DNA of 64,000 bases from Pelomyxa schiedti. Its lineage: Eukaryota > Protista > Evosea. Of this stretch, positions 3,157 to 9,529 are shown piece by piece. The translations under genes and the position numbers were made by a program. The notes beneath the pieces are model-generated. The model ran no database searches. It was not told where the DNA came from and worked only from the letters and a program-made list of their open reading frames with translations. How positions within the stretch are numbered: the stretch's first letter is position 1; the number at the start of each line of letters is the position of its first letter. The stretch lies in the NCBI GenBank assembly GCA_020536535.1, contig JAHLWZ010000091.1:1-64000 (forward strand). Reading direction: 5' to 3'.

Positions 3157-4720
3157 ATGGTGTTAGCACCTACATCTCGGATCTCAGGCTCATTATACGA
3201 TAAAACGCGAAGGCGACGCGGGGCTGGCGTTTGTCGGGGGGGCTCTGGTGCGTTAGGTGGTGCATGGCGTGCCGGCCGGTTCCCGCAGCCGTTTTGCAAT
3301 GTGAATGTTGTTGTGATCTCCGCGGTTGTTGTACTGTTTGTGTGGCAATTTGCGATTCATTCCGAGTGTCTGTCGTAAGCTACTTTTTTCTTTTTTCCTC
3401 TCGTTAACCTTGAGTTTGGACAGTATTTTTAATGGATTAACTTTTTTAATTGATTCAATTTACGATACTAATTGTAACAGTGGGGACTTGCTGGTTCTGA
3501 TCCACACAGCATATGTTTTTCTTGGTCTTCTACGCGTTGGAGTCATGCTTGTCACAGTGACCTATTTCTCATACTCGTAAAGGTAGGTTTTCCCTCGAGT
3601 TCTCACTTGCTTCTAACTATATTAGTGAGGGTACAGAACCCTGCTAAGTGGTATTGGTCCAGTAGTATTTCCGAATGCTACTGCCCTCTCCCCACAGAAA
3701 GAAATGAGAATATCCTTAAATCCAAGAGCAGCCAGTAAAGAACACAATACCGCTCTGAGTGATCAGCCTCTCAAGAAACAGCTCTTCTATGTATGATGAA
3801 CACTCGGCTTTTTCTGTGCTTTTAACCCATGCTGTTATGATTACAGACTTTTGTTCCAAACGATGCATTTGCATCCTCTCCCTTTTCTCGATTTTTCCAC
3901 GATCATGTATAAGGTTTTGTGTAAATTCCAGTTGAACATCTCTGAAGGTACCTTATCTGGAGATATAAGAATACCATTGCTGCAGTTCTGAAAGCCCCTC
4001 AGGGTGATAACTATGTGTATTTTACCACCTTTTTCCCTCCTGTACTTATCCCATTTAGAGACATTAAACCGCAAAAGGTTGTTATACACAACCATATTTT
4101 ATTTGATCTAATCAGAGTTTTGGCAGTTGGGAGATATGGGATCATGCAGGCACTACGATTGCGCGACGAACATCATTTCCCCGACCGAAAAGCCGGAGGG
4201 CACTATGTATAACGAAACAGTCCGCCTTCCATTATTATTGGCTCACTGTCCCCCAGTGGAATATCTTGCCTGTAGTTGTTGCAGGAGACCAGCACAGCTT
4301 CCACACAGGCAAACACAACCAAATGAGATTGACTCACTTTGGTCTAAGTTTTGCCTTTGGGGTGGCCTTGTTGGATCTGTTTTTTCCGTTTGGGGATTTT
4401 AACCAGCATCATCAGGGCAGTTGTCCTTCCTGCCCTGGAACATATTATCTCCTCAGGTGTTGGCTCCCGATTCCAAAGCAAGGTATGATCATGAGATACC
4501 TCACCACTGAGAAATTTCATTATTTATCCCATTTAAACTATAACAACCCATCAAAACACAAGATGAATGTGCCCCAGCAACCAAGCAACACTACCAGTAG
4601 TGCCAGCACTAGGCTCTTATCCACCTGTACAAAAAGTTACAAACAATGGAAGAAAGAATATCTTTTTGTCCTCTTGGGTTTATTTTCAAGGAAGGTGTTT
4701 CCGGGCGAGGGGTGTTGATG
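3157..4720 (+). CDS. Hypothetical multi-exon protein with an N-terminal hydrophobic segment
   Basis: ORF with VVVISAVVVLFVWQFAI followed by a GTAAG donor, then exon-like pieces (PAKWYWSSSISECYC, GSCRHYDCATN); no family recognised and boundaries uncertain. Confidence 0.35.
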
Positions 4721-4884
4721 CCGTTTCAGGGGCGAAGCGGCACCAACCGCCTATACAGTAGAGACGGAGGGGCAAACTCAAACATTAAAAAACTCACATT
4801 AGTGTCGAGCAGGTTGCCAATGATGGCTGATATTATTATTATCCCACCCCACTATCCCCAAAAATGATGCATGCAACCACCACC

Positions 4885-5020
4885 ACCCAAACTGCTCTGC
4901 TCCCAAATGCTTGCTCCCAAACTGCATGCACAACCACCCACTCTTTGCTCCCCCAAATGCACCCAAATGCTCCCAAACTGCAACTCACTCTCCAAATGCA
5001 CCACCGCTCCAAAAATGCAC
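4885..5020. repeat. Cluster of about 8 copies of CCCAAA(C)TGC
   Basis: cccaaactgc, cccaaatgc and tccaaatgc recur with irregular spacers. Confidence 0.65.
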
Positions 5021-5529
5021 TGCTGCCCCACTTAGTATTCACTGCTGTCTGTTTGACGCCTTTTCTTGCCGGTTGTTACTGTAGCCTTTTCTTTTTTTTA
5101 CTATTTTTATTTTTTTCAAAAAATTTTCGCCTAAAAAGTAAAATTTTTGGCGCGCAAAGTTTTTGCTCCCAGAGGATCCCCATCTTGTTGTTTGAAATGA
5201 GCCTATCGTTATGTTTCGTTGTATGCACGGTGTTGGTTGTAGTGCACAGAACTGGTTTCAGTTTGGTGACAATTCTGCCATCATGATGAAGCCCAACTTG
5301 GAGCTTGTGTGGGTTGGATACAGTACCCTTTAACAAGGGAATGACGTGGAGCAAAGGAACAACAACTTTGACAGGGCAGTCACACTTGTTGCTGTTGACA
5401 TCAACCCCTTGGAATGATGTTTGTTGAGGTGATTTCGTTCGCCGTTCAGGTCAAATCTGCAAAAAAGCTGTTCAGTGAACAACACACACGGGGGTGCTTA
5501 CGATGGGTGTGCGGGAAAGCAAATCAAAT

Positions 5530-7609
5530 CAAATGATGTATAGGTGGTGTGGTATTGTCACCGTAATGGGAGTCTTTTACAACAGTACGTCGTGCATATA
5601 CATTCTTGAGAAATATAAACCCCACAATATGTGAGCAAGTTCTGATATCCCAAGCAAGCCTTTCCAAGTTTCTCCATGTTCCCCTTTTGGTTACCTTTTT
5701 GGGAAATTTGGTTTTTCTTGGAGTTTTTTTACCCGGTTATGACATACAATTTTCCAGGTTCTTCACCAACCTCGGGTCAAATAGCAGCAACGCGTTGCCA
5801 TATCAGGTAGGTTTAACCAGGGAACCTACACGACCCGCCTATGGAGCCGAAAGTGCCGTGGTTTATGTGAATGTACGGGCCCCTCCATCCCCAGAGTCTG
5901 ATAACATCCCACAAAGAAATGGCCTGGATCCACGGAAGAGTGCCAACGTAGTGCATTGTCCACCAATAGCCATCAGGGGCAGATGGCATGATATGTTGCC
6001 AGTCAGCAACAGCAGCTGGTTGTTCCCAATCATCAGCGTATAAGTTGTTCCAAATCAGAGGAAAGTGCCAAATTCAGAAGTTTGTTTTTTATCATCCACC
6101 TGAAGGAAGGAAGTTCAGTCACTTCATTGATCAACGGAAGGAGAACCTGGTTCCACCATGCATTGCATCAATGAATACTTCATCTCTAAGGCGACTTTGA
6201 GTTCGTCCGCTCCCTCCACAGAAAATACTTTATGGGTATTGGGAGCACAGGTCCCGTGATACCTCTCCTCAAGTACTACAATATCAACACCGCACTTCTT
6301 CCACACAGGGGCAATGCAGTCGAAAGTATTTGCATCATTTGGCCACTCCCAGCACATCTCTGGAATCCAAGCAGCACGCGAATCTCTTGAAAACGTATTG
6401 AAGAGCAGTTCTTTATGGTACTTGCCACTTCATTCATTCATATCGTCATGAACGAAGGGCATTACATGTTGTGAGTAAGCTGAAGTCATGACACTCCAGG
6501 CCCCACAGTTTACGCCCGCTTTCATCCATTCTACGAACTCTTGGTCATGCCACAAAGCAGACTGTACAAGTGGCCCACTAATGTGAAAATTGCCTGTTAC
6601 TTTATGTGCGGCATGTGCCCACATCACATCATCAAAACCAGAGTGTTCAGAATCATCAGCTCGGCCACGAAGAACATCTGTGTAAGAAAGTGCTTGATTC
6701 CCATGATTAATGAAAACAACATTGAGTTTGGGCTTTGAGTGATCAAAAAAGATAATGCATTACCTTGGCTGAATTTACTCCCATATCGGAGTTAACACAC
6801 TGTACAGAGTCATATGGTCTCCCTTCAAAGGCAGTGTAGATTTCGAAGTTCATTCTCCAGCCTCTTTGAAATTCTTCAGGGAAGAGAGTGCTTGTTTCAA
6901 AGTAGAGAACATCCGAGTTGGCCCGCAGTCCCATCACTTTGGTGTTGTTTTTGACCCCACTTGATCTGCAGTCATCCCACTCGATAGCAGCCTATTCATG
7001 GTTGTTAGTTTTGCCTATTTGAGGGGAGTACTCCAAATACCCTATAGGACTCCGAGCCAGGGCAACCGTATCTACATCCTCCTTGTTGTATTCCAGCAAA
7101 ATAACCACACCCACCTACTGATCATCTCCATTCATAGCCAAACAAATCAATGCGAAATTGAACATAGTAGCTCCCTTCATTGTAAACACAGCCACAACAT
7201 CCTGCCACAAGGAATGTTACTCACCCAACTCACCAGTCTGCCAAACTACTTCCTCTTCACCTTCACTCATATCACACCATCCAACCAAACCACAGCAGTT
7301 TCTCAACTGGAAGTCTCAGTCCTATTCATTCATTTGTTGGTACAGACAATCAACCTTTGTTTTCCGAGAAATCTTCATTGTCATCACCCCTTGGGTCGAG
7401 CGTCTTGACGTGGTCCAAGCGCCACACCACCCCCACCAGCTAATCCCATAATTCCGCCGACACTCTCGCTCCCGATGATGGCATCACACCCCGCCGTGCT
7501 GCATGAACCACCACCGTCAGCACGCTCGTCGGCGAGGCCACCAGCAACACAACTGAACACAACAAAAAGCTACGGCCTGAGCCACGGATGAATGACACGT
7601 CCGCTTCAT
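5530..7609 (-). pseudogene. Glycoside hydrolase family 57-like gene with introns, disrupted by stops and frameshifts
   Basis: GH57-like motifs VVFINHGNQ, FHISGPLV, SAYSQHVMP, AWIPEMCW and YADDWEQ; in-frame TAG 7440-7442 and TGA 6430-6432; frameshifts near 6188 and 6041; 3' end uncertain. Confidence 0.75.
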
Positions 7610-7659
7610 TTTTTAGCAGGCCACCAGCTCGTAATCATTGTTTGATTGATTCGACGAAA

Positions 7660-9529
7660 ATGGCTTCGGTGTCGAGATACGTCAACCAGGAGAACGAGGC
7701 AACTTCGTGCTGGTTGCGCCCAGAGGTAGTGGAGTTCCTGTCGCGGGAGGACATCTATGGCCCACGGGTGTCCCAGCTCCGCCGCGTCATCGCCACCCCG
7801 CCCCCGCTCACCACCCTCCGCGCCAACTTGGCGCCCGGCAGAACCCCAGTCCGCGGCGACGTCGGCGGACCCAACACCAGGGCGAGCCCCGCAGCCGACG
7901 CCGACGCCGCCACCGCAATCACCACCAGGGCCCAGGTGGCGCAGCACCTCCGCGACAAGTTGGGTGCCTCGTTCGACGTGGCGTGCGACGACCGGCTGCC
8001 GGACCTCATCGTGGTGCGCTCTTCGGCCTCGTCGCGCGGCCGCGGCGGTGGCGCAGCGGCGGACTCCCACTCGTCTGAGCCGCCTGCGCCCGCGCCCGCT
8101 GAGTCTGCAAGCGCACCGCCGTCTGCCACGACGACCGCCACGGCTTCGACGGTGACGAAGGGCGAGGAAAAGGGGTTCCCTGAGGTGATTGTGGATGCGA
8201 AATGTGGAGAAGCAGTCATGCGCGGCGCTGAAGTTTTCGCACCAGGTTTGTCATCCAATTGTGTATTGTTATGGGACTTGAGCTGTAGGATTTTTTTTGT
8301 TTTTTTTCTAAGTTTTTTTTTCCCCCCCTAATTTGGAGCTATGAAGGAGTTGTTGGTGCTGAAACAGGGATAAATACTGGGCATACTGTGGCCGTTTATG
8401 CTGATGCCGATGGAACATGCAAGAAAGGTGAAACCAACAAATTCTTGGGAAGGAAAGTGTTTGTTGGGAATGGTGTTGCAATGATGGGAAGGAGCTTCTT
8501 TTACAAGGTTTGGTTTACCTGTGGCGTGCACGCCCAATAATTGACACGAAGAAGCGTAGGTTAAAACAGGTGTTGCTGTGCAGATGACAGAGCGGGTTTA
8601 TCATATGCCACCTCTGAATGGGTTCCTTGAAGACGTGCTTTTTCTCCAGAATTTGCCTTCAATGCTTGTGGCCCCGATTCTGTCACCCACTCCAGGCTCC
8701 TTGGTATCTATCCATGCAACTGCGCATTCCACCTAGCTCATCGACGGATATTTTTGTAGATTCTGGACATGTGTGCTGCACCAGGTGGAAAGACCTCACA
8801 CATTGCTTCCATCATGGAGAACAAAGGGAGAGTGATAGCAATTGACAAGACACCCCAAAAGGTTGTACAACTCAAGGCAACCTGTTCCCGGCTTGGTGCC
8901 ACTTGTGTGGAGTGTTACAGCTTTGACTCAACAAAGCTGTTATCAGAACCTCCCTCCCATTCAACATCCAACTCAACTCCGGCAGCAGCCACAACTGCTT
9001 CAACCAACCCATCAACTGCAACATCTTCAGCCGCAATGCACGTGACAATAGATAATATTGGGGTACCACCTTATCCACCAAATACATTTGATGCCATTTT
9101 GCTGGATCCCCCGTGCAGCGGAATTGGACTGCGGCCATGCTTACGTGAGCCAATGCATTTGAAGGACCTAGAAGGGCACTGCCGGTACCAACGGAAGGTT
9201 TGTTTTGCCGAACCTCACATTGAAATTCACAAAAATTACAGCTAATCCACGTTGCCGTTGCCTTGTTGAAGCCTGGAGGAACTCTCGTGTACAGCACATG
9301 CACAGTGAACCCACAGGAAGGCGAGCAGAATGTGCACTTCATACTCACCACTTTCCCAAACATGCAACTTGTGGCACCACCACAGTTTGTTCACGAATTT
9401 GGGGGAATTGGAAGGAATGGAACTGGCCTGACTGCGGACCAAGCCAGAATGGTTGTGCGGTTTGATCCCTGTGTGCAAACTGATCACCCTGCTTTCTTTG
9501 CTGCAAAGTTCAAGAAGAATAGTGTTTAG
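7660..9529 (+). CDS. NSUN6: RNA cytosine-5 methyltransferase NSUN6 (PUA plus RsmB/NOP2 domain)
   Basis: TTLRAN; VIVDAKCGEAVMRGAEVFAPG; LDMCAAPGGKTSHIA; ILLDPPCSGIGLRP; LVYSTCT. Confidence 0.93.

Follow-up and report, generated by a model that had tools for sequence, protein, structure and literature searches.

Does Pelomyxa schiedti carry a working gene of glycoside hydrolase family 57 (GH57), a family usually treated as prokaryotic, at a locus in which the conserved GH57 motifs can be read? The locus lies on the minus strand within the first 64,000 nucleotides (nt) of contig JAHLWZ010000091.1, the stretch that was analysed and is referred to here as the window. An initial annotation, made from the sequence alone, had proposed a laterally acquired, domesticated and secreted alpha-glucan-active enzyme, possibly from an undescribed eukaryotic GH57 clade. 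Our results indicate, with a probability of about 0.9, that window positions 5834 to 7549 are a pseudogene derived by a DNA-level partial duplication of a GH57 gene on another contig, C1413, and that this parent gene was acquired by lateral transfer and later gained introns. The window copy cannot encode an enzyme. For the gene family as a whole, it is likely that the pelomyxid amoebae Pelomyxa and Mastigella possess a functional GH57 enzyme that is secreted, encoded by an intron-bearing gene and part of a divergent, prokaryote-derived subfamily, with the window fragment recording the ongoing birth and death of its copies. Thus, part of what was first noticed at this locus has been confirmed, and part of its interpretation is supported.

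The locus was read by three-frame translation, scored in a six-frame genome search with PF03065, and compared with the C1413 paralogue by blastn and MAFFT pair alignment. Searches used single exons or database proteins; joined exons, those of C1413, served only in the codon comparison and in one row of the tree. Contigs of the DNA runs X1 and X2 (Logan contigs, assembled separately) and of run X3 were also used, X3 being treated as cDNA on the basis of its intron-skipping joints and its gene-confined coverage (5804-7651 only). The features of the locus are as follows.

5834-7549, minus strand: GH57 pseudogene fragment, whole; homologous to C1413:4602-6372 (blastn, 89.7% over 1785 nt; MAFFT)
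7355-7449, minus strand: exon 1 equivalent, carrying -5 and +1 indels
7202-7354, minus strand: intron 1 equivalent, 153 nt, GT..AG
7041-7201, minus strand: exon 2 equivalent, N-terminal beta-sandwich domain, with -1 after 7186, -2 after 7132, -1 after 7088 and TGG>TAG at 7117-7115
7115-7117, minus strand: in-frame TAG, Trp in the paralogue and in Mastigella (codon comparison)
6992-7040, minus strand: intron 2, 49 nt, GT..AG, skipped in a cDNA-like contig (joint 6990>7040, cut +1)
6764-6991, minus strand: exon 3 equivalent, with a 36-nt in-frame deletion after 6967
6721-6763, minus strand: intron 3 equivalent (43 nt in the paralogue), acceptor AG changed to AT (G>T at 6721, minus strand)
6147-6720, minus strand: catalytic exon, with HGNQ (region I), NFHISG (region II) and AWIPE(M) with the nucleophile Glu (region III)
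6430-6432, minus strand: in-frame TGA, Trp (TGG) in the paralogue; invariant in the X1 and X2 DNA contigs and present in the X3 contig identical to the window
6100-6146, minus strand: intron 5, 47 nt (42 nt in the paralogue), GT..AG, skipped in a cDNA-like contig (joint 6097>6145, cut +2)
5834-6099, minus strand: last exon, truncated, with YADDWEQ (region IV, acid/base Asp) and a -5 deletion after 6041

The five motif strings first noticed are indeed present in the order given, all on the minus strand: VVFINHGNQ (6720-6694), FHISGPLV (6588-6565), SAYSQHVMP (6483-6457), AWIPEMCW (6372-6349) and YADDWEQ (6040-6020). Membership of GH57 is borne out by the six-frame genome search, in which the window scored 32.4 bits against a PF03065 cut-off of 21.2, with a match that spans one TGA; single window exons stayed below threshold (17.2 and 11.5 bits), and Pfam gave no match for the N-terminal exons of the window. 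However, the strings had been presented as one spliced translation, and no single open frame joins them. The TGA at 6430-6432 falls between SAYSQHVMP and AWIPEMCW, and on the way from AWIPEMCW to YADDWEQ the copy has lost 1 nt (after 6192) and 5 nt (after 6041). The codons for the nucleophile Glu and for the acid/base Asp region are retained, with these two deletions between them. The residue directly after the nucleophile is Met (R>M at about 6356), a position that is Arg in all 12 of the 12 aligned family members. Region V, the helical region and the C-terminal domains are missing from the window copy, as homology stops at 5834, before ETGWHD. Ordered motif strings do not prove a gene; establishing the reading frame needs comparison with a paralogue.

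The GT-AG introns proposed for the locus are real, as seen in the cDNA-like X3 contigs that skip 6992-7040 and 6100-6146. The intron given as an example, at about 6735-6765, fared less well: a 31-nt GT..AG intron (6763-6733) can be drawn there, but the homologous intron of the paralogue is 43 nt long and ends in CAAG, where the window reads CAAT. The other acceptor available to the window gives a 71-nt, frame-shifting intron (6763-6693), and it is this skip that occurs in RNA and that the GenBank model Pelo_1117 adopts. Likewise, the signal-peptide-like leader exists as a hydrophobic stretch, the coding frame of exon 1 reaching upstream through it to about 7560, but an in-frame ATG is absent. 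Each copy has only one ATG nearby (window 7609; C1413 about 6437), and it is shifted by one frame from the conserved leader-bearing frame; the frame that begins at 7609 runs into a stop after 30 codons. No small GT..AG intron of suitable length that would bring the ATG of either copy into the coding frame was found.

The relationship between the two loci is that of a partial duplicate to its source. The 89.7% DNA identity includes the introns, which occupy the same positions in both copies, and the exons are 95 to 96% identical. The shared segment of about 1.75 kb corresponds to the 5' 55% of the parent gene, with unrelated sequence on either side of it at each locus. Across the genome, PF03065 detects these two loci and no others, the one on C1413 scoring 48 bits with no stop, and the four further 3' model exons on C1413 were found nowhere else in the assembly. 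The possibility that the two are alleles of one locus was rejected, since the flanks are unrelated and only 1.75 kb is common. The window copy has accumulated two Trp-to-stop changes, at least seven frame-breaking indels (-5, +1, -1, -2, -1, -1 and -5) and the 36-nt in-frame deletion. GenBank models it as two "hypothetical proteins", Pelo_1116 (72 amino acids) and Pelo_1117 (153 amino acids), the ends of which coincide with the TGA and the frameshifts.

Over 433 codons in homology register, the pairwise ratio of nonsynonymous to synonymous divergence (dN/dS) was 0.43. When the 38 amino-acid differences between the copies were polarised with the Mastigella outgroup, 16 fell on the window branch and one on the C1413 branch, while 20 were undecidable; the 38th lies inside 13 residues missing from the GenBank model, with no outgroup column. 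Placement of 16 of the 17 polarisable changes on the window branch corresponds to a binomial p of 2.7e-4, and the change of Arg to Met beside the nucleophile is among them. The stops, frameshifts, retained introns, truncation and excess of changes on its own branch together define a non-processed, duplicated pseudogene. With a dS of about 0.08, the window duplicate is much younger than the transfer that brought GH57 into this lineage. The course of events would be as follows: the 5' 55% of the C1413 gene was copied as DNA, introns included, by a duplication whose mechanism we infer; the copy, which ends in repeat-rich DNA, would then have decayed under relaxed constraint; and it would still be transcribed, with partial and aberrant splicing.

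The X3 contigs bear on both copies. The contig that skips the 42/47-nt intron carries paralogue-specific letters, and a 43-nt skip is compatible only with the acceptor of the paralogue; the C1413 gene is therefore expressed and spliced. A window-identical contig over 7040-7602 retains intron 1, and the 71-nt skip is also present. It follows that the window copy is probably transcribed but mis-spliced.

This probable transcription and partial splicing might suggest that the fragment has been co-opted, either as a non-coding RNA with a regulatory role or as an antisense partner for the parent, for which an exon identity of 95 to 96% could permit RNA-RNA interplay, or as the source of a short peptide corresponding to the 72- or 153-residue model. 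We consider this improbable. The polarised changes, concentrated on the window branch and affecting invariant residues, give no sign of constraint; neither short model includes region I, II, IV or V, and there is no second species with a fragment of this kind.

Another explanation would be that the lesions are sequencing or assembly artefacts, or that the locus is a chimera, with the window and C1413 representing a single gene. The assembly was indeed made from single cells amplified by MDA (PMC8887013), and C1413 is a short contig of 6.5 kb. However, the Logan contigs of X1 and X2 agree with the window at every stop and indel. In X2, positions 5300-7800 lie on one contig of 13,257 nt, in which the fragment is linked to the eukaryotic gene next to it, and contigs with paralogue letters coexist in the same runs, diverging from the window exactly at 5834; the flanks of the two loci, as noted, differ. 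Because independent run contigs reproduce the lesions, the 13-kb contig spans the locus and paralogue contigs coexist with it, the stops and indels are real, and the contig is not chimeric, contrary to the concern raised with the initial annotation. An artefact is thus very improbable.

That the window locus is an intact, functional, secreted gene from which splicing removes the stops and shifts is barely credible in spite of the ordered catalytic motifs and the apparent transcription, given a TGA and a TAG at Trp codons in exons that are continuous in the paralogue and Mastigella, the lack of any GT..AG pair that would excise the stops while keeping the conserved residues, more than seven indels, a 3' half with region V that this contig lacks and that C1413 alone possesses, and RNA-guided GenBank models that amount to two short fragments. 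An alternative genetic code, in which TGA and TAG would specify Trp, was also rejected, as there are two different stops and many frameshifts, and the paralogue has TGG at both sites. The proposal of a domesticated secreted enzyme at this position therefore does not hold; the locus is a truncated pseudogene with two nonsense codons, frameshifts, a lost acceptor and no C-terminal half.

Several observations weigh against the pseudogene and its proposed parentage as set out here. With X3 contigs identical to the window, TGA included, the copy cannot be called silent. X3 itself has no library type on record, so that its cDNA nature is a deduction. A dN/dS of 0.43 is below 1, which means that part of the divergence arose under constraint or on the functional branch. 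That the parent is fully intact at its 5' end is not proven, since C1413 extends only 160 nt further upstream and the closest ATG lies in another frame. Finally, this GH57 subfamily is biochemically uncharacterised.

The initial annotation had called for a search for intact paralogues, and the gene on C1413 is one: a full-length GH57 gene, named "glycoside hydrolase family 57 [Pelomyxa schiedti]" in GenBank (KAH3731547.1, here P0001), with an 806-residue model in nine exons. In contrast to the window copy, it is of full length, free of stops and frameshifts, supported by spliced RNA, and retains all invariant residues. It has region V (E..WH; ETGWHD) as well as helical and C-terminal domains. 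From its N-terminus, the protein consists of a beta-sandwich, the GH57 barrel, a helical region and a second beta-sandwich that is mutarotase-like, and its nucleophile Glu and acid/base Asp are kept. The GenBank model starts at an internal Met, downstream of the hydrophobic leader, and it removes 39 nt (C1413 5369-5331) that encode 13 amino acids, VTGNFHISGPLLQ, the conserved second barrel strand. This annotated intron looks false, because the segment is kept in all homologues and its 39 nt are read without a break in an X3 contig with paralogue letters.

Profile scores place the family in PF03065 (P0001, 34.2 bits; the Mastigella protein, 30.2 bits), and NCBIfam gave no match for the four family members searched. 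A search of 1.84 billion representatives with the 209-residue catalytic exon of C1413 retrieved only 187 proteins at E <= 1e-3. The best match was KAH3731547.1, encoded on the 6534-nt contig C1413, and the next were prokaryotic proteins of 760 to 2290 residues, 30 to 40% identical, with type IX secretion (T9SS) tails, dockerins, X25, CBM53 or CBM25 modules. A word search with P0001 added an open reading frame (ORF) of Mastigella eilhardi and Thermococcus proteins named as GH57 or carbohydrate-binding. By sequence, the only solved relative is the GH57 4-alpha-glucanotransferase of T. litoralis. The family profile aligns E284 and D380 with E123 and D214 of that enzyme: region III, WIPERCWE, aligns with WLTERVWQ, the nucleophile Glu being E123, and region IV, vvYadDwEm, aligns with VFHDDGEK, the acid/base Asp being D214. 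The usual form of region I in GH57 is H-x-H-Q-P; in this subfamily an invariant H-G-N-Q (HHGNQ or NHGNQ) stands at the first strand.

Structure prediction, another of the checks first suggested, points the same way. The AlphaFold2 models (pLDDT 75.6 for P0001 and 82.4 for the Mastigella protein) both appear to contain the incomplete (beta/alpha) barrel typical of GH57. The P0001 model matched 1K1X with a Foldseek E of 9e-15. The Mastigella model matched GH57 amylopullulanases with a Z of 28.9 and a root-mean-square deviation (rmsd) of 3.1 to 3.4 A over 320 to 349 residues, and GH57 proteins filled the top 18 rows. The C-terminal domain resembles a mutarotase, a feature shared with the T. litoralis enzyme and with GH38. 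The amylopullulanases of Staphylothermus marinus and Aquifex aeolicus (7E1Y, 9JLU) and the T. litoralis 4-alpha-glucanotransferase (1K1W; Z 26.6 for 1K1X) have the catalytic barrel and helical region in common with the predicted amoeba protein. The solved GH57 enzymes are only 10 to 16% identical to the subfamily, which differs from them in an added N-terminal domain of about 170 residues and reads HHGNQ in region I.

The closest counterpart of the parent gene is EP01105_P015732 of Mastigella eilhardi (EukProt, 813 residues; P0155), an orthologue that is 52 to 56% identical over its full length (52% over 99% by word search), with the same domain order. Its ORF is complete and encodes a classic signal peptide (MLKVVVVAAALLLVVGAVAA...); as it is known from a transcript, it is silent on introns. 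The large secreted GH57-like proteins of prokaryotes, from metagenome-assembled genomes (MAGs) of the FCB group and from Thermococcus (WP_014788690.1, 1210 residues), are 30 to 40% identical and collinear over about 800 residues, including the N-terminal domain, and all have signal peptides. They add T9SS sorting tails, dockerins, X25, CBM53/CBM25 modules or a membrane anchor, whereas the amoeba proteins comprise the core only, with introns. Secretion, which had been claimed for the window locus, is thus supported for the Mastigella orthologue and the prokaryotic relatives, with their clear signal peptides, and not for the window copy; for Pelomyxa itself, we infer secretion or lysosomal targeting.

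The parent enzyme is predicted, most likely, to hydrolyse or transglycosylate alpha-glucans (starch, glycogen or pullulan) eaten as food. This substrate is suggested because the relatives carry X25, CBM53, CBM25 and CBM48-like modules, and because of the surroundings of the closest prokaryotic homologue, P0002, whose gene lies in a bacterial-type operon, flanked by those for an ABC ATPase with TOBE_2 and for a sugar-binding protein.

Among the species-representative prokaryotic genomes scanned, 212 contained relatives, mostly those of Eisenbacteria, Krumholzibacteriota, Fibrobacterota, Cloacimonadota, Marinimicrobia, Calditrichota and Bacteroidales, plus Thermococcus. A tree of 74 rows was computed with IQ-TREE (LG+C20 PMSF, quick search), with more distant GH57 proteins as the root. 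In it, Pelomyxa and Mastigella eilhardi formed one clade (support 100*) nested within the prokaryotic subfamily. This upholds, for the gene family, the earlier suggestion of lateral acquisition from prokaryotes. A laterally acquired eukaryotic gene is further indicated by the RNA-supported GT-AG introns, the 13-kb linkage to a host gene and the Mastigella orthologue. P0002 was considered as a link to the donor and rejected: long branches meet there, and the eukaryote clade, P0002 and a bacterial clade form an open fork. The data fit one transfer before the Pelomyxa-Mastigella split, followed by intron gain. This would have been a single prokaryote-to-amoeba event in the ancestor of Pelomyxidae, with the spliceosomal introns gained afterwards.

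GH57 in a eukaryote is not without precedent, since GH57 transcripts have been reported in anaerobic gut fungi (Orpinomyces) and ascribed to horizontal gene transfer (HGT) (bioRxiv 10.1101/487215). That case likewise concerns an anaerobic eukaryote and transfer from prokaryotes, but in a different lineage, and the two are likened here by description. The intact P. schiedti gene is itself already named GH57 in GenBank. The P. schiedti genome has 7.4 introns per gene (PMC8887013), and the published inventory of its glycoside hydrolases comprises 182 genes in 44 families, with GH57 not listed (PMC10579272, Dataset 1; ISME J 2023). Searches of the literature on GH57 in Archamoebae, amoebae, or protists with HGT found nothing relevant. 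The eukaryotic GH57 clade suspected at the outset, consisting of Pelomyxa and Mastigella, is described in no paper found. As the window itself is a decaying gene copy, little is at stake there; the gene family matters somewhat more. Here GH57 has become fixed, with introns, in a lineage of eukaryotes, a second genus has an orthologue, and the finding means that the alpha-glucan digestion toolkit of P. schiedti is incompletely described, GH57 having been omitted from the inventory.

The surroundings of the fragment contain repeats on one side and a host gene on the other.

4170-5445, strand not assigned: dispersed repeat resembling a transposable element (TE), just 3' of the fragment; at least 20 partial genome copies, 69-80% identity
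5601-5809, strand not assigned: another repeated segment, with 80% identity to C905:9345-9552, lying 25 nt from the point where the homology breaks off
7661-9245, plus strand: RsmB/NOL1/NOP2/Sun-type RNA methyltransferase, intron-bearing, divergent neighbour (PF01189, 67.8 bits at 8769-9242)

Pfam gave no match for the ORFs of the flanking repeats. The likely ATG of the methyltransferase, at 7661, lies about 50 nt from the ATG of the GH57 fragment.

A further repeat was met at the 5' end of the fragment, where one cDNA-like X3 contig joins the 3' end of a terminal repeat of about 100 nt, of the form TG..CA, directly to window position 7602. This repeat occurs at least 17 times (C226:8400-8927, C596:50292-50743 and 13 or more further contigs); at two sites its copies are paired, 424 to 428 nt apart, and followed by ATTATGGTAGCA, which resembles a primer-binding site (PBS). 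Spliced-leader trans-splicing had been considered for the 28-nt loose end at 7602, with its at least 17 occurrences in the genome, and was rejected because the 28 nt are the 3' end of the TG..CA repeat and are followed by varied sequence or a PBS-like TGG; they are not a 5' exon before GT. The element looks like a miniature long terminal repeat (LTR) retroelement of the TRIM type, and some cells or haplotypes may carry such an insertion at 7602, driving transcription of the pseudogene.

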